Below are positions 419 to 32,277 of a stretch of DNA of 32,826 nt, piece after piece (the first letter of the stretch is position 1; the number at the start of each line of letters is the position of its first letter). The notes below the pieces were generated by a model that saw only the letters and a list, made by a program, of their open reading frames with translations, did not search any database and was not told the DNA's origin. Source of the stretch: Salpingoeca rosetta (taxonomy: Eukaryota; Protista; Choanoflagellata); NCBI GenBank assembly GCA_033442325.1, contig JAWQFM010000003.1:2376149-2408974 (forward strand). The letters are read 5' to 3'. The position numbers and the translations under genes are program-made.

Positions 419-420
<2 letters not shown>

Positions 421-553
421 TTCATTGGAAATGGGCACATTGTCCTGGATATCAAGAAGAAAGAGGAACAAGCAACCCTGAAGTAGCTTGGAGAAAGGAA
501 AGAGGGGGAAGGGGGACTGATGTCAACAAAGTGCGCGTGTACGTGTAGTACAC

Positions 554-605
554 GTGCGTGTGTATCATCGGCAATGGGTAAGGCGAAAGACAATCGTCAC
601 CGCAC
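554..605 (-). ncRNA. Possible further C/D snoRNA (degenerate boxes)
   Basis: GUGACGA box-C variant, GUCUUUCGCC antisense to LSU GGCGAAAGAC (+582-591), CCGA, and GUGCG/CGCAC stem. Guide-to-D spacing is non-canonical. Confidence 0.35.
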
Positions 606-630
606 TGGCACGACTGCGTGCATGTCTCTT

Positions 631-686
631 GTGCGTCGGGGTTGGATTGTTCATGATAATTTCGCTATTGTCCTCATCTGACACAC
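631..686 (-). ncRNA. Box C/D snoRNA candidate, SNORD69-like (LSU A-loop G methylation guide)
   Basis: Minus strand: gtgtg..AUGAGGA...UGAACAAUCCAAC-C-CCGA-cgcac. The 13-nt guide (+641-653 gttggattgttca) matches conserved LSU GUUGGAUUGUUCA. The D+5 rule points to the first G of GGA (human 28S G4494 equivalent, the SNORD69 site, from recall). Terminal stem GUGUG/CGCAC. Confidence 0.7.
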
Positions 687-1904
687 ACTCGCACACGCAC
701 ACACGCACACACGCACGCAACAGCGTGGAAGCGCGGAAGGAGAAGAAGGGAGGAAGAAGGGAGGAAGAAGGGAGGAAGAAGGGAGGAGGGAGGACAAAGG
801 AAGGAGGGAAGCCAACAGGCTGGAGCAATGTCCTTCGTGGAACTCGAACAAACTCCTCTCGAAATTTGCACTGCTTCGCTCAGTTAGAGCGTGCTCACTC
901 ACCAGTCAATGTGTGTTGGGAAAGGGTCTGCCTCGCTCGAACGGTGGCACGCGTGGGGTCTGTGTGGTGTTGCCTGCAAGCAAATGCTGGGAGGAAAATG
1001 AACCGCCGCGCTCTGCGCAAGTGCGTACTCTCTCAGCTGCTCTTCGGAGCTTCGGCGAGTTGTTTTCTGGCTTGAGGGTGTTTCTCTGTTGGCCACGAAG
1101 GTTCACAGCACTTCAAGGCAAGGGTGGGGGTGAATGTTGACCAACAGGACGACAAATCTTCAACAGGACCGCAAATCTTCCACGATGGAGTGGGGACCTG
1201 TTTGTGTGGGTTTGCTGTGTTTTGCTTCTTCGATCGCTTGGCTGGCGACGTTGACACGTGTTGGTCCAGCTTGTCGCTGGTCGGATGGTGGTGCGTGTGT
1301 GTTGGTCTGTTTGTGTGCATGGGAGAGCGCGTGCGCGCGAGTGAGATTGCGCTGGGCTTGTTTGAACAAAGCACCTCGGTTCTCGGCTGCTTGTCGGGTA
1401 GGTTGTTGTGGTTTGCTTGGTGGGCGTGCCTTGTTTGATCTGTGCTTCTCTTCTGGTGGTTTTACTGGCTTATGTTAAGGTAATGTAACATAACTTCAAG
1501 GAAGAGTTAGATGCATAAGTCACGAGGCAGTGTGACTGTCGAGCGATCATTGCTCAGGGTTGAAAGAAAAGGTTACATAAAGCAAGTCACGCGCACGCAA
1601 TGTCGCAAAGCGAGCGTGTGTCGCGTGTCCTGTTGTGCCGTAAGTGAGCAAGGAAATCAAAGGAGCGGCACGGCGCTGCCGTGTCCTCATGTTCTTGTGA
1701 TCGTTCATGCTTCTTTTTCGAGCTTGAAGCCTGTCCCAGTGATGTGACAAGGTGCCACTGCATCACATTCGCCTGCACTCAAAGGGAGCGTGGGGTAAAG
1801 ACTCGTGTGAGGTTATGAAGATGTGCAGCATACAAGCGCGAACAGCACTGAGAGACAAAAGAAAAGAAAGTGTGAAGGATACACACACATGTGTGTGCGT
1901 GCAG

Positions 1905-2008
1905 GCATGTCGTCAGCAGGGGAATCGAATACGATCTTCAAGAGAACAACGTTCATTCAGTTGTTGGATTGCTCGCTGTATTAGCTGATTTCGCATCACC
2001 CGGCATGC
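1905..2008 (-). ncRNA. Box C/D snoRNA candidate, double guide for LSU rRNA
   Basis: C GUGAUGC (1993-1999), D' CUGA (1957-1960), C' UGAAGA (1935-1940), D CUGA (1913-1916), terminal stem GCAUG/CAUGC. The D guide GAUUCCCCU pairs with LSU AGGGGAAUC. The D' guide GAGCAAUCCAAC(A) pairs with LSU (U)GUUGGAUUGUUC with one G-U. Confidence 0.8.
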
Positions 2009-2370
2009 AAAAGGACAAGAGAGGAGCGGAAGGGTGGAAAGAGGAAACAACAGGCTGAAAAACTGTGGAAACAGATGTAAAAGAGCTACAAAGAGAAAGA
2101 GGGTGTTGGAGAGCACAGGGCGCGCTTACTTACTTCCAGGTATCAGTGAGGCTGTGAGGGACGCCCTCCTTGGTCCCTGGTCCCAAAGAGTCAGCCATCC
2201 TTCCTGCTTGGTAAGCCTGCAGGCAATACACATACACAAACGCCAGACAAGCAGGAGGAAGAACCACACGCGTGAGATTTTCAAAGAGCACCAGAGAGCA
2301 ACAGTTGCCGACCACTCCAGTACAAAGAGGGAGGAGACAGCGCTCACAGCACGCGCTCTGCCGCCACGAC

Positions 2371-2457
2371 ACCCGTCAGCAAGGGAAATCGAAATACAGT
2401 TCTTCAAGAACAAGTTCAGTGGCTCGCGAATGTATTTGCGTGTTCGCATCAACCAGG
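2371..2457 (-). ncRNA. Box C/D snoRNA candidate, paralog of 1905-2008
   Basis: C UUGAUGC (2446-2452), D' CUGA (2416-2419), C' UGAAGA (2401-2406), D CUGA (2376-2379), stem CCUG/CGGG. The D guide GAUUUCCCUUG pairs with LSU CAAGGGGAAUC with one G-U. Confidence 0.75.
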
Positions 2458-3361
2458 ACAGCGTGGGCAGGCTTCTTTGGAGCGAGACAGGGGAAGAGAG
2501 GGGGAAGAGAGGGGGAAGGGAGGGGAAAGAAGCGTCAAAGGAGGGAAGGTCATAGTCGTCGTGGCTTACCAATCTTGTCGGGGAGAAAATGGAGAACAGC
2601 GCACGCGCGCGGTGCATACGCGTGAGTGCAGGCACAATGTGTGTGCTGTCCACGTGTGCGTGGTCGAAGAAAATGGCAGCCAGCCAACCGAGCCAAGCCG
2701 CTGCTGCTGTTGTGTCGTTGTGTTTCTGCGTTTCTGCCGCCTGCTGCTGAACGGCCACAGTACAGCGTCCGCATCGTCCCGATGGTTCCCACGATTATCC
2801 ACGAATGATTTACAATGGCTTTCGACAAACGGTCTGTGTAGATTTATTATGGAATACTTGGACAAATTTTCGAGCCAAGGCTGCCGCGAAGAAAACAAAA
2901 CCAGCACAGCGACAAACCGTTTTTTCGGTCTGTGGTGAGTTTGCGTTTGTGATGGTGTTGGGGTGCTGTGGAGTTGTAAGGACTTGCTTGATAATATGTG
3001 CCCTTCGCTTCGCACTGCCCGGGATGGGGGGGGGAGCGAGCGGGTTGCTTCGATCGTCACACACACACGCGCACACACAGAGATACAGAAAGCCAAAGAT
3101 AGAAACACAAGTGGACACAGACACAGACACAGACACACACACACACAGACAGACACAGACACAGACACACAGACACACACACACACACACACAGACAGAC
3201 ACACACACACACACACACAGACAGACAGACAGACAGACACACACACAACCAAGTTCACCCAACAAGCCGGTTCACTTCTGTTTGTCTGCGTGGCTGTTGG
3301 TAGTGCAGTTGAAAAGGCTCGAGACAGTGGGCTTGGAAGTTCATAGAACAAAGCCTGAACC

Positions 3362-8940
<5,579 letters not shown>

Positions 8941-11955: not shown

Positions 11956-14900
11956 TCAGGCAGCAGCAAGCGTGCGCAGGGGCTCGTCCAGGCCTTGGAG
12001 GGCGTTCGTAAACGCCTTGTGGTGCAGCTGCTGCAGTGCGGCCAAGCCATCGCGACACAGCGCAATCGTTTGCTGGCGCACAAACATCTGCACGTCGTCA
12101 TCAGCACCTGCACTTCCGGAACCGTCCTGCGGCGCGTGCCTGGGATGGCGCCTCCTTGCGCGACTGCTGCGGCGAAGCAGCTTTGCAAAGCACCGCACAA
12201 GCGCAGCCGTGGGCAGCGTGGTGCTCGTGTAGTAGCACATGTTCCGGAGCGCATAAAGCGCCGTCAGCGCAACCGTCGGATGCCGCTTCTCAGACGTGAG
12301 CGAAATGACGCCGTCCGTGATTGCCAGCCGCGACACACGCACGCGGCCTTCGGGGTACAACGTGTATGTCGCCAAGAACGCACACAGCTGAAGCTGCAGC
12401 TCTGGTGGACCAACCCCGCTGCTGCTACCGCCATTACCACTGCTACCGCCATTGCCGGCTTGTGAAAAGCCACCAGAACCGTGTTCACCACGCTCCACAC
12501 CTTCGCCGTGGGAGTGAACTGAACCTCTTCGCCGGCTCGCCGCTTTGTTGCCACCGTTTCCACCTGCTGCCAAGCTGACCTTGAGCCACTTGTCGCGAAT
12601 CACATCCAGCATGCGCTCGCTCTGCAGCAGCGGGCGGAACTTGGAGCAGGCACACACGTGCTTGCACAGCCCCAGGATGAGGGCAGCTTCCTCAGCCTTC
12701 ACGGCAGCCGAGGCAAACCGCTTCAGGACAAGCCGAATCACCTCTTCAAACTGAGCCAGCGCCTCAGAGTCGATGGCCTGCACCGTGGCAAGCACGCTCG
12801 TCACCGCACGCAGCCACCCCTGACGCAGGGTGTCTGTGCCACTGCAGCATGTGTGGGCTCCCTCGAGCGCAGACATGAGCGGCGTGAGCGCGTCCACAGT
12901 GCACGCTTCGTCCGGGTCGTGATACAAGCAGCACGTGATGACGCGGAGCGTGTCGTGAATGGCAGTGCGTACGCGAGCCAGCCGCATGTTGTCGTGTCGA
13001 GCAATCGCGTCCTGCTCATGCTCCTTCAGGCGTCGCAGCGACGCCGCACACAGCTGGCGAATTGGCTCCAGCGTCTGCGTGTCCGATAGCCCTTGCACAA
13101 ACACGCAAAACTGGGACAGCAGCCCACACAGATGCGTGCGCGCGCCGCCCAGGTCCCCAATGTCGAAACACTCGTCCCACAGGTGTCGCAGTGACTGCAG
13201 GTTGGCCAGCACATCGTGTAGCATGAAATCGACAACGGGTGGGCCAACCAATTGCGCAGATGACAACACTGCTGCTGCTGCTGCTGATGATGATGATGAT
13301 GCTGGTTCTTCCTGTGCTGCGCCCTCGCTACCACCACTCTCGCCTTCTTTGGTCCCAGCCAGGACAATGCCACCACCACCATTGTGTCGATATCGATGAC
13401 TCTGCTGCTGTTGCTCCTGGTGGCTATATTGTTGTGCGAGGTGAGGCATGTTCTCAAGCAGTGCCAGCCAGTGGGCGGGCTGGAACTGGCACACAAGCAC
13501 GTGTAACATGCCCGTGCATTGCTGGAACGTGAACGTGAGGGAGCTCACGTAGCCTTGCACCTCAGCCCGTGGCAAGCCAACAGTCAGCGCGGGAATAAGA
13601 CCAGCACCCAGTCGCCGGCACACGCGCAGAAACTCGGGAACGTGCACAGCTGCCGCTTCCAACACATCATATGCTGTCGTCAAGTGGAGATCCTCTTCAG
13701 CGCCACCATTCCCAGCTCTCGTGTTGGCTCCGTCGCCTCTGCGGTGCTGCTGCAACAGAGAGCGCCGCACGTCGGGCTCCTGCACACAGAGGCATGCGCA
13801 CGCGCACATGTCTGACGTCAGCGCCAACAGCTGCTGAACAAACTCCACGCGAACTTGCACTGCGGCTTCTTCAAACGCATCATCACCCCCCGTCGTACGT
13901 GTTGCAGTGCCCGCTTGTCCGCCTCCCATCTCCGCGCCTTCCACAGTCCAGTGCCCACCACCACCACCATCTGCCTCGCCGTGAGTGCTTGCTCCAACAC
14001 TGGAGGTGCGGTTTTGTGATTGATCGAAAGATGAAGACGATGCTGCCACTGGTTCGCGTACACTCACAGACCCGCGTCGCACAAGCTGCTGCACTTGCTC
14101 GTGTGTTGTGGGCACCGCAAGTTGCACAAGTTGGCCCATGCGAATGAATGTAGTCGCCAGGTGGCGGGAACACCACTTCCGCAGTCGGGACAGCGTCCCC
14201 TGGCGAAGCCAATAGGGCGCGTTGATGTCAGCGTACACAGCCCGGCACAGGCGCAGCGTGGCAGACAGCAGCGTGTCTGTCACGGTCATGGGGGAGCGGA
14301 TCGTCGCCTCAAACGTGTGCGCGCAGTTGTCATGGGGGTTTCCATGACCGTTCTCTCTTGTTGAGCTCTCCACCGCTGTTGACACATGCAACTGTGACCA
14401 GCACGTGCGTAGCAGGACATCCACGCCCGTGCACACGTGTGCCCGCGCAAATAGCCGCGCACCGTGGTGGTGCAGCAAACCGTGCACAGTTGTGCAGAAC
14501 AGACTCAGCCCCTCCTCGCCCAGGCCAACGTCACACAGCGCAGGCAGCGAATCAAAGAAGTGCATGGCCCCAAACACGCGGTGTGTTCGCACACGCACTG
14601 TCATCATTCGCCCACCCTCGCCCACAGAGACGTCGTTCACGCTCGCAGCAACAGCGGCGGCGGTAGTATCATCATCATCATCATCACCATTGCCATTACC
14701 ATTATCATCACCACTGTCAACATCCCCAGGCTGCTGCAGGGCCGCCCAGGCATCAGCAGGAAGTGGCAGCAGCACGCGCGAGGCGAGCGATGACAGTGCC
14801 TCCATGCATGCAACGCGCACGCACGGCCGCACGTCGCGCCGGTACAGCAGAGAGAACAGCACATCCACCGCGGAGACGGACGCCCCACTGTAATCGTCCT

Positions 14901-17900
14901 CAGCGTGCTCATTGCCATCGCCATCATCCTCAGCACCACTCCCGCCACGCGCGCTGGGACCGGCACCCGAGTTGTCGGAGCCTTCGCCAAACACAGCTGA
15001 CGCAGGCAGCGTGCATCGCAACAGCTGTCGAAGCGCCAGCGGGCTGCTGCTGGCGAGAGATGCAAACAACTGCAGAGCAAGCGCCGCCAACACGGCGTCT
15101 CTGTCATGCATCAGCACGAACAACCATGACAAGGAAGCGCCTGCGCTTGGTGTTGCGTTGGACGCGTCGCTGTTCGCTTGCTGTTGCTGGAAGGCCGGCG
15201 ACGAAGGGGTAAACAGCTGCAACACATCAACATCTTGCGTGTGGGTGCTGTCGTGTCTTCCCCGAGCGCTCTTGCTCTTTCCTCGTTTCCCTCCGCCACG
15301 GTCGTGACCACCACCGCCAGCATGACCACGCGACTGCCGGTGTCGTGACGCTGATAGTGTATACGTGCCCAGCGGGGACGGTTGCGTCATGAAATGCTTC
15401 TTCAGGGCGTTTTGCTTCGAATGTGTGCGCTGACTGCCGTGTCCACTTTTCCGAAGCGCCGACCCGCGCTCACGCAATCGTGGCTCGCCCGGGCGTGGCA
15501 GCATCGTTGCTGATGCTGTGGATGCTCGTCCAGCGGCGTGTAGCCGTTGCTGTTGGTGCTGTTGTGCGCGTGTACGCCGACGACTGGCACCACCTTCACG
15601 CTGGGATGATGCTCCATCCACCGCGTATGTGTGATCCGCATTGCCACCGCCGTTGTCTTCATCATGGGTGCCAGGTCGGTGTGAGGACGACGATGACGAG
15701 AAGGGGCCAGTAGTGTGTGTGTTTCGCCGGATTGCCTGCAAGCAGCTGACGAGAATGCTCAGTGTGGCCTTGAAGTGACCCTTCTCCTTGAAGCTGAACG
15801 TGCCAGACCACGCCTTTTGCGTCGTGTCCATGAAAGGGTGCATGATGGGTAGAACTAGGTTGATGATGCGCGCAGCAAGCTTCGTGCTGATGCCATGTGC
15901 AAATGGGCCATCGGCTTGGCAGATGGCTTGCGTCATGGCTACCGCACGCCCGAGAACGAACAGATCAAAGTAGTGTGGGTTGTTGAGCGCAACCTGAAGC
16001 GTGACCAGCGCCTGCTCTCGAAGCCGTGCCACCGGGGCAGCAACCCTCAGCCTGCCGCATGCAGCAACAACAGCGAGCTCCAAATCCAGCAACGCATGCA
16101 CAATGCGGTTCAACACGTGCTCGCCACCAACGTTGCCTCGTGAGGTGTCGTCATTAGCCTCCTCGTTGTCACCGTGATGGGGGACACTGTCGCTGTCCGT
16201 CGTCGCAAAGGAGGTGCTAGTTGTGGCACTTGCGCGCCAGACGCCAAACGATGTGCCAAGCTGGCGTGCACGCGTCTGCGATGTTGTGGGTGGTAGTGTT
16301 GTGGCAGTTGTTGTTGCTGCTGCTGCGGCCAGGGTGTCTGAGATGAAGCGGGCGCTTGTGGCCGCGCTGCTTGCGCCGCTCATCGCAGCAGCAGCACTGC
16401 GGAACCCATCCTCATCGCCTTCATTGCCACCACCAGCACTTGCCTGGCCAGCTGTTGTACTCTCGCCACGTTTCATTGCCCGCAAGATGAGGCGCTGAAT
16501 GTCGGCAGCCGCAGCGTCCAGCACCCGGCACAGGCGTCGCACGCACCGTCGCCGCCATGGTGCGGTCTCTGTGGACGACAGCGTTTGCTGGCCGTTTGTT
16601 TCTGCATGCTTCTGATTGTCGGCATCGTTGGTTGAGAGTGTGTCCACAAAGGAGGAGATGGCTTCAAGAAGGGTGCACAGATGTGATACAAAGGTAGGCA
16701 CTGAGCTGCCCGCCGCGTTGGCAGTGTCCGCGCGCAGCGATGTTTGGGTCGATGGAATGCCGCTCGTGTCTTCTTCGCCAGCGTACCGCGATGATGACAG
16801 TGATGATGCGGAGAAGCGCGCGCGTGACCTGCCCAGTGCCGTGTGGGGATGACGTGCAGAGCTCGCAACAGGCACAACAGCTGCTGTTGTCGCCGCTGTC
16901 GTCGATAGCCGGACGAGAGAGCGCAATAGGCTGGCAAGAGCCGGCGTACATGTGGCTGGGCGACTGGGCTCAGTTTGCATCAGCAGCGTGAACCGATCAA
17001 TGAGCCGAGCCATTTGCTCCTCAGAGGGAAGGTGGCTGCCCGCTTGCTCGCGTGCCCGCCATGAGTGTGGCTCGTGCAGTTGCGACGCAAGCATATCTGT
17101 CACCCCGACGGCCCAGCGTTCCAGGTGCTGCATGCATGGCGTGGCGGTTGCAGCGGCTGTCACGAGCTTCAGCACGTCCTCATCGAGGGAGATGTGTGCG
17201 GGAAACGAAATTTGCTGTCGGGACACCAGCTCCTGGATGGCGTCGAGCGATTTGTGTCGCATGAGAAGTTCTGTCTTGCGCACGCACTGGGGGAATGGCG
17301 TGGCCGATTCCCGCTGCTGCTGGCGTGTGGAGGCAGGTGCTGTGTGGATCAAAACGTCACGCAAGGGCGATTGCGACGTCGGCTGTGCTGCTCGGGCTTG
17401 GATCCATTGTATTGCTTCAGGTCCAAGTACGAGCAAGAGCTGCTCAGTCGTGAGCAGCGATCTCTGCTGCTGTGTTGTTGTGCCTCCAACGCTGACTGAG
17501 CTCATGTGCGTCCAGAACAAAGGGGAGCGCACGGCTGTTCGAAGCACGTGAAGGCATTCCGGGGACAGAAACCCGCTGTCGACGTCGTAGTCTTGCCACA
17601 AGATGCGGCTCACCAGAGCCACCGTCAATGTTTTTGCCTGGACGTGCGTGTGTACATGAGTGAGTGAGTGAGTGAGTGAGTGAGTGAGTGAGTGAGTGAG
17701 TGAGTGAGTGAGTGAGTGAGTGAGTGAGTGAGTGAGTGAGTGAGTGAGTGAGTGAGTACATGCATGTGCCCATGCGTGAGTGAGCAATTCTTCCGACACA
17801 GCCGATTATCAGCAATACTTTGCAGCAACGCACCGACGACGACGCTCGTGGAAAATGCACGAGGACGGGTGCGGCCTGTGTGACCTTGACGAGTGTTCGA

Positions 17901-27753: not shown

Positions 27754-28581
27754 TTAGATGTCCTTGCCATTGCTGGTCTTGCTGTGGGGTGTCTTGTTTG
27801 GGGCGATGATGGGAAGGCCGGCAAAAGTGGTGAGCGCCACGCGCTGGTTGAGTTCGCGCATGCGCGTGGCGATGCTAAACACGACGTACAGGTAGCTACC
27901 GATTCCCACGCCAATGTGCCACCATGCATGCAGCTCGATGACGGGGGCAAACACGCCGAGGTATGCCCGAAGCAGCTGCAGGTGTCCGCACAGGTGGTTG
28001 TCCACGTTCCACAGCGCAAAGGCGGAAAGGTACATCGTGATGGCGACCGGAAACAAGATGCGAATGCGCGGCGGAGCAGTGCGGCTCTTCAAGTAGGAGA
28101 GGAACATGATGCCAGCAACCTGGATACCGTAAGCGGTCTCATGGAACACGGCGTTCTTGTTATGCAGGTACATGTAGGTGACGAGGACGGCGTAGAGCAC
28201 CAGCCCCGTGACCAGGCCCAGGCCGTGCAGCCCAGTGGTGTATCGGGAGTCCACGATGCAGTACAGGAAGATGCACGAGGCGTAGATCATGCTGAGCTCA
28301 TCCACCAGCTGGTAGTGCCAGAGCAAGGTCATGTGGAACAGCCATGATCCGATGCCCACGCCCAAGAGGCCCAGGAACGACAGCACAAACCTGCGCTCGA
28401 GGCCAGCGATCGCGCAGTTGTAAAGGCCCACCAAGCACGGCACAATGATGGCGAGGTTGCTGAGCGTGTTCCAGAACTCGGCAACGTACGGCAGCAGCGT
28501 GTAGTTCTCCTCGCACCAGTCCAACGTCGATGTTGGGTGGCCCCAGAACGGTGTGGACGAGGAGGAGGAGGAGATGGTCAT
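27754..28581 (-). CDS. ACER3: Alkaline ceramidase (CREST family), single-exon CDS, 275 aa
   Basis: FWGHPTSTLDWCEENY..AEFWNTLSN, GIGSWLFHMTL..QLVDELSM, WNVDN, LHAWWHI: the Ca2+ loop and Zn-binding His motifs of ACER3/YPC1. Confidence 0.95.
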   Translation of the reverse strand: MTISSSSSSTPFWGHPTSTLDWCEENYTLLPYVAEFWNTLSNLAIIVPCLVGLYNCAIAGLERRFVLSFLGLLGVGIGSWLFHMTLLWHYQLVDELSMIYASCIFLYCIVDSRYTTGLHGLGLVTGLVLYAVLVTYMYLHNKNAVFHETAYGIQVAGIMFLSYLKSRTAPPRIRILFPVAITMYLSAFALWNVDNHLCGHLQLLRAYLGVFAPVIELHAWWHIGVGIGSYLYVVFSIATRMRELNQRVALTTFAGLPIIAPNKTPHSKTSNGKDI

Positions 28582-28855
28582 GTTGGATCGATGGATGGGC
28601 AGTGGCAGTCGAGTGTCTGCGTTTGCTGTGTTTGTTTGTTTGTGTTTGCTGTGTTTGTGTTTTTGCCAGTGCAGTTGTGGAGGATTTGCGAACATCTTCC
28701 AGGGAGGAGCGACAAACACACACACACACACACACACTAACACACACACACAGCAGACAGACATACAAACAGACACACACACACATACACAGACACGCAC
28801 ATGGTCACGTGCTGCATGGCGAGAGCGTTTACTGGTCGTGCTGACGGCTGCTGGG

Positions 28856-29588
28856 CTATTGGACAAGTGCACGCAAGTCTTCAAGGGAGGTGGGCACATA
28901 CTGCCCGCCACGCTTGGCATCGCGAACAAAGATGACACCCTTGTCAATGTACACGGTGGCATCTCCAAACGAGTACAGTGGCTGGCCGTGCGCCGTGCGC
29001 CGCCCTTGCTTCGGCGCGAACACAACGCCACACTCCGCAGCAGCACGCGTCACCAGATCGCGCACAGACGTCGCACGCGGCGCACTGACACCGAGCGACG
29101 CTGCTGTCGCTGTCGCCGCCATGCGTGACGGCCCCGTTGCCCCGGCCTTCGCCGCCTCTGCAGCGCCACGTGCTGGCGATCCCATGCGTGGGGATGCAGC
29201 CGCAACCGGCGACTGTGGCCGCGATGGCGTGCGCGTGCGCTCAGATTCCCGGTCGAGAGTGCGCAGTTCGTACGCGAGGGTGGAGGGGTCGTCCATGGCA
29301 CGGTCCATAATCATCAGCGCCCGGTGCAGGCGGCTCTGTCACCAGACGCGCATGTGTGTGCATGTATATATGCGAGCGTGTATGTGAGCGTGTGAATGAT
29401 TTAAGTGCTGGTGAGGTGAGGCAGAGGACAAAACGTTCGACGCATTGAAAGACGACAAAGGAACAGCAAGCGTCATCAACAACGCAAACATACGCACACG
29501 CACTAGCACACACACACACACACAGACAAAGACAGACACACGCGCTATGTGCACACAAGCACAGACACAAACACACGCACGCGCCATG

Positions 29589-29661
<73 letters not shown>

Positions 29662-30686
29662 AAACACACGCGCACACACATACCATACACACACACCACA
29701 ACCAAATGCACGCCATGTACGCACCTGGATGGTCGGGTCTTCGAGGGCGCGGGCCGGGATGAGACGCTTCCACTGCAAATACCAGTCGGCAATTTCATCG
29801 TACATGGCGTCTTCTTGCATCATCCACACGCACAGGCAGCGTAGCAGCTTGGGAAACACGCACCCGGCCCACAGGCTGACCACATCCGAGGTGGCAAGCA
29901 TATCCTCCCACGCCATGGCTGTCTCAAGCACGCCAAAGTCCTGCTCGGCAGGGTTGATGGCAAGCTTGCTGAGGTGTTTCCGAAGCTTGGGCACAACCGA
30001 GCGCGCCAGGAACACGTGCATGTCGCGTGTGCGCCACACCCCGTGCCAGGGCTTGATCATCGCCAGCGCTGTCGTGTCCGCGGCGTCCCACGCGCGCAGA
30101 CACACGCCGAGCTTGTAGCGGACACTGGTGTACACCTCGTGCAGATGCGTGTGCATGTATGGCAGCAGCGGGTGCAGCCACACGTGCACGGGCACGCGGT
30201 CTGTTCGCGGGTCCCAGGCTTGCACTGCGTTCTGCAAGCGAGGGAGGATGAGTTGGCGCGCAATGTTGTCGAGCATGGTGGTGGAGAGGAACGGGCTGAG
30301 CGCATCGAGGAGAGCAACGACGGGCGCCGGGTCGCGTGGTTGCCAGCGCGAGACAAGCGCAGTGCGAACGTGGGGAAGAACTGCAGACCACACAAGCGAC
30401 TCAAACGTCTGTAACGCGTGATTGGTTGCATGTGTGTGTATGTTTGCGTGTATGTGTATGAATGAGTGGGTGAGGGAGTGCCAAGTTAGATGTGGACGTG
30501 GGATAGACGCAGAGGCACAGACAAAGCAGGAACACACAGACAAACCAGGAAACAAAGCAGGAAACGCAATCGTTAATGCATGCACAAACAAAGAAAACAC
30601 ACACACACACACCCAAAAAAACAGCACACACAGACACACACACACACACACAAAAGCACACGCACACACACACACACACACACAAA

Positions 30687-30726
<40 letters not shown>

Positions 30727-32060
30727 CACACACACACCCTACCAACCGAGTCTGTGGCGTCCGCGGTGTCGCTGTGGTGCCTCGTGTTGTGCCTGTCTGC
30801 CGTGCGCGGCAAGATGCGCTTCCACTGACGCAGATACCTGACGGGGCGTGTTGGCTCCTGCAGCGGCTGCCACGACTTGAGGCGTGCTGCAAACAGGTCA
30901 ATGGCCGTGGCGTAGGCCAGGTGCGCCAGCCCATATCGCCTGTATTCGCGCGGGTATTCTGCCTTGAGCTCTGCATAGCCTTCAATGGCACGCAGCATGT
31001 CGCTCTCCTCGTTGCCAACGTCTGCCAATATCGCCGTCTTTTCCAGCAGCTGCTCCAGGCTGTCCACTGCAGACTGCTCGGCGCCGAGCCGCTCGTTCAG
31101 CTCCCGCTCCTCCGACTCCAGCGCCTGTATTTGGCGGCGCGTGCCGCGCACCTTGTTGTTCCACGTGTGCACGTCGGCCTCCGCCATCTCCAGCAGCACG
31201 GCGATGTTGTGCTGCAGCTCCGGGAACGGCCCTTTCGGCTGCAGGTGCTGCTGCTGCTGCTGCGCCGCCGTTGCCTCGCCCATGGTTGAGCGCACCTGCA
31301 CCTGCGGGCCCGTCATGTCCACAATCTTCATTGCCGTGGGCGCTTTTTCGTCACCCTCGCCCTCCCCAGGCATCGATGACAGCAGGCGTTCGGCCGTGAC
31401 GTAGCTGTAGGTGATGGGTGCCTTACGCTTGTCCGTGCCCTTGGCACGCCACAGCTGAGTCTCCATGGCGCCCTTGTCCTCCGCCTCCAGCGCCTTTCTT
31501 CTGCGCTCCTGCCGCTGGCGCCGATAGCTGCCGAGCGCCGCGGGCTCGTCCAGGTCGCTGTCCAGCTCATCTGAGGAAGAGCGGTACTCGTCATCCTCGC
31601 CCTCTTCCCCAGCGCCAGCGCCGCGCTCCTCGCGAAAGTGCTGCCGGCTCTGTTTCGTTCGCTCGCCCTTCTCTTGCAGGCCTTGCTTCGCCTTGCGCAG
31701 CTTTGCTTGCACAGGTTCCACGATGCCGCGGCGCGCTCGCCCAAGGCCCTCGCCTTTCTTCCAGCCCATCTTCTGCAGCAGCTTCATGCCGATGCCCTTG
31801 GTGTGCGCCTCAAACTTGGCAAAGTCCTTGTCAAGCCGCACATTGTCCGGGCGAGTGAACGTGGTGTAGCCGACGCCACCTCGGCCCTGCCCTTGCTCCT
31901 GGTCGCCATCGTCGCCTTGTTGCTGGCCTTGTTGCCGGCCTTGTTGCTGGCCTTGTTGCTGGCCTTGTTGCTGGCCTTGTTGCCCCTCTTCCTGCTGCTG
32001 TTCCTGTTGCCGTTGTCGGGGGAAGGAGGAGAAGCTGCTTGGCTGTGCAGTCGGTTCCAT
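28856..32060 (-). CDS. TFIP11: Tuftelin-interacting protein 11 (Ntr1/Spp382), G-patch spliceosome disassembly factor, ~825 aa
   Basis: Exons 30747-32060, 29725-30408, 28856-29335. G-patch FEAHTKGIGMKLLQKMGWKKGEGLG..GIVEPV; KIVDMTGPQ; PELQHNI; GCFC domain WDPRTDRVPVHVWLHP; YDEIADWYLQWK; C-terminal GQPLYSFG..VYIDKGVIFV. Confidence 0.95.
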
Positions 32061-32277
32061 CGTCGTCGTCGTTCGCGGTCGTCGTTGTTCAGTCGTGTGA
32101 TGTGTGCGATATGTAATTTGGATGTCACGGGTTGAAATCCCGACAACCGCACTTTGTCGCTCACATTTTTTTTGAGGGGACAGGACCTGCTGCTGCTGCT
32201 GGCTGCTGCTGCTTGCGAACCAGAAGCAGGCGGGCAAACTGGAAGGCGAAGGTTGTTGCTGTTGTGGGAAGAAGGGA
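32061..32277. promoter_or_regulatory. 217-bp bidirectional promoter/5'UTRs between TFIP11 and the Tudor gene
   Basis: Divergent ATGs at 32060 and 32278. Confidence 0.55.

Follow-up and report, generated by a model that had tools for sequence, protein, structure and literature searches.

Vertebrates (UHG, GAS5) and flies have long provided the classical examples of non-coding host genes with a single box C/D small nucleolar RNA (snoRNA) in each intron. We have analyzed a stretch of 32,826 nt from the choanoflagellate Salpingoeca rosetta (GenBank assembly GCA_033442325.1, contig JAWQFM010000003.1, positions 2,376,149 to 2,408,974 of the forward strand; hereafter the window), and our results make it likely that a locus on its minus strand is of this type. 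Two box C/D units, A and B, and probably a third, C, lie one per intron in a spliced and apparently non-coding transcript. A preliminary description of this DNA, made from its letters alone, had proposed box C/D snoRNAs in the introns of a transcript without recognizable coding capacity, and this core claim was borne out. The same description had called such SNHG-type hosts typical of animals, which is too narrow: in Neurospora crassa, UHG-like non-coding hosts, whose open reading frames (ORFs) measure 159-267 bp, encode box C/D snoRNAs singly in their introns (PMC2780460). Because the layout is present in N. crassa, it is evidently older than animals. The likeness between the Neurospora hosts and the present locus is one of layout, and they carry different snoRNAs.

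In comparison with UHG, GAS5, the SNHG genes and dUHG, the locus has a spliced polymerase II transcript, short unconserved ORFs, a single snoRNA per intron and an early stop far upstream of the last predicted junction. It differs from them in carrying only two to three snoRNAs, in having no sequence similarity to any SNHG and in belonging to a unicellular relative of animals. We found no catalog of choanoflagellate snoRNAs in the collection of papers searched, and in the listed papers that name both S. rosetta and snoRNA the latter comes up only in passing.

The closest described counterparts of the individual guides act on the large-subunit (LSU) ribosomal RNA (rRNA). Arabidopsis Gm2918 is equivalent to human Gm4494, and Arabidopsis Gm2125 to human Gm3627; all are methylated in their respective species (PMC8583080, PMC11542601). 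The first site lies 4 nt 5' of the A-loop Um2922/Um4498 and is guided by AtsnoR34 in Arabidopsis and, according to a review table, by SNORD69 in humans. The guide of Arabidopsis Gm2125 is AtsnoR60.

Units A and B and their predicted rRNA targets

Units A and B stand out by their layout. This was demonstrated with the regular expression UGAUGN-(15-40)-CUGA-(3-30)-UGANGA-(12-30)-CUGA, which was run on both strands of the 32.8-kb window (65.6 kb) and matched A and B alone. Two matches compare with 0.03 expected, as 100 dinucleotide-preserving shuffles gave 0.03 matches per window and only three of them contained any match. Both units were found where the preliminary description had placed them, with C, D', C' and D boxes and terminal stems located.

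Unit A occupies 2457-2372 within host intron 1 (minus strand, like all positions of the locus given below unless a plus sign is shown). It is closed by a 4-bp terminal stem, CCUG (2457-2454) with CGGG (2375-2372), and consists of a C box UGAUGC (2451-2446), a D' box CUGA (2419-2416), a C' box UGAAGA (2406-2401) and a D box CUGA (2379-2376), with the D guide GAUUUCCCUUG at 2390-2380. Its C-to-D' and C'-to-D spacers measure 26 and 21 nt. Unit B, at 2008-1905 within predicted host intron 2, is built in the same way. Its terminal stem, GCAUGCCG (2008-2001) with CGACAUGC (1912-1905), has 7 bp and one C.A mismatch; the C box UGAUGC lies at 1998-1993, the D' box CUGA at 1960-1957, the C' box UGAAGA at 1940-1935 and the D box CUGA at 1916-1913. 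The D' guide GAGCAAUCCAAC is found at 1974-1963 and the D guide GAUUCCCCU at 1926-1918, and the spacers are 32 nt (C to D') and 18 nt (C' to D). Compared with the RUGAUGA consensus, the C-box contexts read UUGAUGC in A and GUGAUGC in B, each accompanied by a CUGA D box, and both units have the internal CUGA and UGAAGA of a D'/C' pair. Sequences able to form a terminal stem were present in A, B and C. As a separate observation, the C-to-D' spacer of unit B holds AGCUAAUACA at 1988-1979, which we take to be sense-identical to a segment of 18S rRNA; 10-nt matches of this kind are expected by chance at that length.

Local alignment of the introns holding A and B gave a score of 47 (maximum among shuffles, 31) over a segment reaching from D' to 2 bases beyond the D box. 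The likeness includes the C-box region, and no alignment was obtained for the intron flanks. Judged by sequence, A and B are sister (paralogous) snoRNA genes. No further copies of A, B or C were found in the window. Likewise, a search of the whole window with Rfam at its gathering threshold, which the preliminary description had suggested for SNORD69 and other C/D families, returned no match to SNORD69 (RF00574) or to any other curated C/D family. Since there was no match at threshold, the units are best regarded as functional analogs acting at the same or neighboring sites and not as family members; as they read, A, B and C would not be fileable under SNORD69, snoR34, snoR60 or another curated family.

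A guide-target pair was counted only where the duplex covered the fifth position 5' of the D or D' box. The ribosomal DNA (rDNA) came from metagenome contigs containing the complement of the unit C guide, GTTGGATTGTTCA, extended by one C as in rRNA to 14 bases. By blastn, 55 of the 120 retrieved loci were rDNA and about half of the 120 were chance 14-mer matches, and Rfam identified complete eukaryotic small-subunit, 5.8S and LSU genes in loci L031 and L020. Conservation of the A-loop segment is not measurable from these loci because they were retrieved with an A-loop pattern. As null guides we used 160 twenty-mers located 5' of CUGA elsewhere in the window, and each guide was scored by its Watson-Crick pairs with eight diverse rDNA units, of which the median was taken. 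A null calculated on the single unit L031 was dropped in favor of this median, being inflated by expansion segments and repeats.

The median scores were 13 for unit C, 11 for the D' guide of B, 10 for the D guide of A and 8.5 for the D guide of B, while a single null guide of the 160 reached 10 and none went above it. The D guide of A thus has a null p of about 0.006, and the D' guide of B exceeds all 160 null guides. Unit C pairs with LSU GUUGGAUUGUUCA over 13 Watson-Crick bp in 8/8 rDNAs, and the 2'-O-methylated nucleotide (Nm) is predicted to be the first G of GGA. The D' guide of B pairs with GUUGGAUUGUUC, beside the A loop, over 12-14 bp with one G.U, and its predicted Nm is the U directly 5' of unit C's target G. 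The D guides of the two sister units would act elsewhere in the LSU, that of A on CAAGGGGAAUC (11 bp, one G.U; second G of GGGG) and that of B on AGGGGAAUC (9 bp; third G of GGGG), so that they pair with CAAGGGGAAUC one nucleotide out of register. Complementarity of roughly 10 nt or more next to D or D', with the fifth position in the duplex, was therefore present for the D' guide of B, the D guide of A and unit C, and reached 9 bp for the D guide of B; the antisense elements of 9-13 nt described earlier thus reappear on real rDNA as 9, 11, 12 and 13 nt. An alternative target of unit A's D guide, UAAGGGAAGUCGG, offers 13 bp with 3 G.U and is universal. It was set aside because we could place it on no known methylated site and it is not common to B, and it stays a secondary possibility.

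The predicted targets were placed on known methylation sites by calibration against published Arabidopsis positions. When the target G of unit C was anchored as Arabidopsis G2918, the base was correct at 20/20 published Arabidopsis Nm sites between 2641 and 2960 (five rDNA loci), which fixes the register. The fifth guide position of unit C therefore falls on Arabidopsis G2918/human G4494, as the preliminary description had proposed. Unit C is in this respect like SNORD69 and AtsnoR34, with its fifth position on the same G, 4 nt 5' of the A-loop Um. In contrast to them, it has no Rfam match to SNORD69 or the plant families, a CCGA D box and a length of only 58 nt, and the D' guide of unit B aims one nucleotide further 5'. 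Site tables that are limited to plant-shared sites list no methylation, in human, yeast or plants, of the U targeted by the latter.

The second proposed site, Gm3627, was matched less exactly. Among nine rDNA loci, Arabidopsis G2125 fell on the third G of GGGG in five and on the fourth G in three; the remaining locus gave an A, which is impossible. The D guide of unit B, directed at the third G of GGGGAAUC, thus resembles AtsnoR60 and the guide of human Gm3627 in meeting Arabidopsis G2125 in 5/9 rDNAs and the position 1 nt 5' of it in three; its target would be at or within 1 nt of Gm2125/Gm3627, with the register uncertain by one nucleotide. Unit A's D target lies one nucleotide further 5' than that of B, and neither unit has a family-level match to AtsnoR60. 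This site therefore held to within one nucleotide for unit B and did not hold for unit A. Taken together, four Nm positions are predicted, two of them in GGGGAAUC (its second and third G) and two in GUUGGAUUG (its U and G).

The host transcript

Public runs were aligned to positions 425-3060, and the low-depth contigs of one of them (X4) outlined the host. Exon 1 (2570-2793, reaching at least that far upstream) is covered by contigs at 2643-2793 and 2569-2644. One contig joins 2215 to 2569 (cut +1), skipping 353 bases whose ends read CT..AC on the plus strand, and therefore defines a GT-AG intron on the minus strand, intron 1, at 2569-2217 (GT 2569-2568, AG 2218-2217), which holds unit A. This is exactly the first junction of the preliminary description. 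Exon 2 (2134-2216, 83 nt) is covered at 2141-2215. Intron 2, at 2133-1848 (GAA|GUAAGU...UCUCAG|U), and intron 3, at 902-478 (CUG|GUGAGU...ACUUCAG|G), are predicted from strong GT-AG consensus sites, and would hold unit B and units C and D, respectively. Exon 3 (903-1847, ends predicted) is expressed, as contigs at 1313-1463 and 1502-1652 demonstrate, and has no recognizable ORF. The X4 contigs covered exons exclusively, with zero intron sequence. The candidate snoRNAs are thus placed in the introns of a spliced transcript, one each, with RNA confirming intron 1 and consensus sites predicting introns 2 and 3. An 8-bp inverted repeat, CCUGCUUG/CAAGCAGG (2255-2248 and 2210-2203), was also seen on either side of the 3' splice site confirmed for intron 1. 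The repeat matched microRNA models in Rfam weakly; it may hide this splice site or have arisen by chance.

The spliced exons showed no conserved protein-coding frame. The longest ORFs of the four-exon spliced form have 95, 76, 71 and 58 amino acids; none of these four belongs to a Pfam family, and the 71-aa ORF, which spans exons and was the sole host ORF used in a word search, had zero relatives. For the spliced ORFs, these searches uphold the earlier statement that no protein is recognizable here. A different possibility is that the host encodes a micropeptide, a frame of 49-71 aa starting in exon 1 or 2 and ending in exon 3, with the snoRNAs as passengers like those of ribosomal-protein hosts. 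The AUG of exon 2 is in good context (A at -3, G at +4) and opens a 49-codon frame, and the frame crosses predicted junction 2 and, in its 71-aa form only, the confirmed junction 1. It stops about 80 nt into exon 3, however, approximately 860 nt upstream of the last predicted junction, and the 945-nt exon 3 is low-complexity in every frame. GAS5-type hosts are targeted for nonsense-mediated decay (NMD) by a stop far upstream of the last junction, and the stop position of the present frame would fit NMD in the same manner. With neither a Pfam family nor a relative for the frame, we consider a protein-coding host unlikely.

Upstream of the host lies the gene of the condensin-II subunit CAP-H2, whose first exon is at +3362-3457 (CNDH2_N, E 1e-11); given this position, the two genes are arranged head-to-head. 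The spacer between them (2794-3361, 570 bp or shorter), in which a (GT/GTCT)n tract occupies 3070-3250, probably serves as a bidirectional promoter.

Several observations weigh against the snoRNA-host interpretation. Rfam searches relaxed to E up to 10 (300-2800, 545-705 and 1895-2020) gave nothing credible, with a best E of about 3; the best C/D-type matches, at E 3-5, were to the unrelated families snoZ7, SNORD96, sR9 and sR33, and the microRNA and long non-coding RNA matches were noise. Targets were evaluated on rDNA of eukaryotes other than S. rosetta. The D' guide of unit A has no target, its 7 pairs being at the null level, and the 9-bp D guide of unit B has by itself a null p of about 0.1. 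The segment CAAGGGGAAUC, which was not part of the retrieval pattern, is intact in 4/8 rDNA units and, among 11 loci with GAAUCCGAC, in five. Since units A and B may have arisen by recent duplication, the likeness between them tells little about constraint. Of the three junctions only the first is confirmed; the evidence is one low-depth contig of run X4, and that this run is RNA is a guess. Three raw RNA-seq runs (X10-X12, species label, 2026) contributed 0, 2 and 1 reads on 425-3060; mature RNAs of 60-105 nt were not among the available reads, the raw runs being too sparse (0-2 reads) to serve as a test.

One could argue from the missing Rfam match, and from the mature RNA not being observed in these sparse runs, that the transcript is an ordinary one, non-coding or untranslated, in whose introns box-like motifs have simply arisen by chance. 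This would have to account for a layout seen twice where 0.03 were expected, in adjacent introns and on the spliced strand, as well as for A-B paralogy (47 versus 31) and guide pairing above the null. We regard such a coincidence as very improbable, and intronic box C/D snoRNAs in an apparently non-coding host as the likely explanation of the locus.

Based on these observations, we propose the following course of events. The minus-strand polymerase II gene, head-to-head with the CAP-H2 gene, would be transcribed and spliced, and, with no conserved protein in its exons, its useful products would be the box C/D snoRNAs cut from the excised introns, one per intron. The C/D and C'/D' boxes of A and B are expected to bind Snu13, Nop56, Nop58 and fibrillarin. 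Methylation of the 2'-O would then fall on the nucleotide that pairs with the fifth guide position 5' of D or D'. In this way, the D' guide of B may direct methylation of the U just 5' of the human G4494 equivalent, within the stem adjoining the LSU A loop, and the D guides of A and B that of the second and third G of CAAGGGGAAUC, the target of B being at or beside Gm2125/Gm3627. Unit C, as a probable minimal third snoRNA, would be directed exactly to Gm4494/Gm2918, the SNORD69/AtsnoR34 site.

Unit C and the remainder of intron 3

Unit C (687-630) is a candidate single-guide C/D snoRNA of only 58 nt in predicted intron 3. Its terminal stem, UGUGUG(UC)/(GA)CGCACA, has 6-8 bp and appears with 8 bp in the minimum free energy fold. 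A C-like box AGAUGA (context cAGAUGA) lies at 679-674, the guide UGAACAAUCCAAC at 653-641 and a D-like box CCGA at 639-636. The unit had been noted previously at 686-631 and is indeed present there; its boxes, however, depart from consensus. Because both boxes do so, we call the unit probable only.

The coincidence of predicted targets with human sites had been offered as an argument against chance. For unit C, a 13-nt match to rRNA is by itself no argument against chance. A control search turned up another antisense match of 13 nt, again perfect and to conserved LSU rRNA, at +6045-6057, in a coding exon of CAP-H2 and without a D box. This match follows an AUGAUGA that belongs to an Asp-rich coding stretch, and we take it as chance; about 0.9 chance 13-nt matches per window are expected from 921 conserved 13-mers. 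In view of this control, a 13-nt rRNA match by itself was rejected as evidence, and the match at +6045-6057 is a useful warning against calling snoRNAs from complementarity alone.

The complementarity of unit C could accordingly be a chance match, or the remnant of a decayed copy of the D' half of unit B, with whose D' guide it has CAAUCCAAC in common. The off-consensus CAGAUGA and CCGA, the very short length and a stem made of GU/AC repeat sequence, which is common in this genome, are all in keeping with this. On the other hand, only about 0.03 such matches are expected on the strand of unit C within the 2.2-kb stretch, and the unit is on the spliced strand of a host already carrying two snoRNAs. 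Its duplex stops 1 nt before an xxGA box, which places the fifth position on a G methylated in both human and Arabidopsis; a GAUGA is found 45 nt upstream, and a stem of 6-8 bp closes the unit. Decay would not produce a pairing that is longer and cleaner than that of the D' guide of B. We therefore lean towards unit C being a third, very short box C/D snoRNA, while chance or decay is an alternative to be taken seriously, if somewhat less probable.

A fourth, weaker unit of the preliminary description, D (605-554), fared poorly. It has a C-like GUGACGA at 600-594 and no CUGA downstream, hence no D box, and its best complementarity (10 bp in 3/8 rDNAs) is out of register with any box and at the null level, leaving no guide in register. 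As a snoRNA in its own right, D is not supported, and we reject it as very unlikely. Units C and D might instead form one snoRNA of about 135 nt, with AGAUGA as C, CCGA as D', UGACGA as C', AUGA (about 567-564) as D and a GUGUGU/ACACAC stem. Such a GU/AC stem is able to close 692-552, GUGACGA does resemble a C' box, and some 77 nt would separate the 3' end from the predicted 3' splice site, as is typical; in addition, CUUACCCAUU pairs over 10 bp with LSU AAUGGGUAAG in 3/8 rDNAs. Yet the fused unit has no CUGA, its duplex begins only at position 5 if AUGA is taken as the D box, its match is at the null level (median 7 to 8.5) and its fold is no better than shuffles (z -0.9). The fused model is, in our opinion, improbable, and we prefer unit C as a separate candidate.

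Neighboring genes and significance

Outside the locus, the window contains several further features. A single exon of a D-2-hydroxyacid dehydrogenase lies at +129-329 (Pfam 2-Hacid_dh_C, profile positions 84-147 of 178), enclosed by long CA/GT microsatellites (1-110 and 330-420). The rest of the domain was found in no plus-strand frame up to 3400, so that the exon represents either a gene cut short, a pseudogene or a break in the assembly. An uninterrupted ORF of 1946 codons on the minus strand (11956-17796) has no Pfam family and no relative in a word search. An alkaline ceramidase ORF (27754-29043, minus strand; Pfam Ceramidase) has, as read, a 167-aa N-terminal extension. Its relatives include a EukProt transcriptome protein with 72% identity, a protein of Monosiga brevicollis (45%) and animal ACER3 (40-47%); the second-best by score is a chytrid (Podochytrium) protein of 589 aa, over twice as long, with 38% identity. 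These relatives point to a choanoflagellate other than Monosiga, in agreement with the earlier guess, made without knowledge of the source, that the DNA was from a probable choanoflagellate. A TFIP11-like gene (G-patch and GCFC; 29545-32234, minus strand), split across two ORFs, adjoins the ceramidase.

We can speculate further that choanoflagellates already own an animal-style non-coding and probably NMD-prone host with one snoRNA per intron, in which drift of the guides after duplication has left pairs of guides 1 nt apart at two functionally central sites of the LSU. One pair would aim at the second and third G of GGGGAAUC, the other at the U and G corresponding to human 4493 and 4494. We put this forward tentatively, as the less probable side of the question. 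If true, adjacent nucleotides would be methylated, one of them absent from the tables of plant-shared sites and one guided by a 58-nt snoRNA with a CCGA D box.

In conclusion, the locus reveals no new mechanism; it is a new annotation of a known layout, adding two solid methylation guides and one probable guide, and it offers concrete positions for methylation mapping. A non-coding host with one snoRNA per intron is now seen in the closest unicellular relatives of animals, which is expected rather than surprising, and fits the view that this layout arose no later than the opisthokont ancestor and not within animals.

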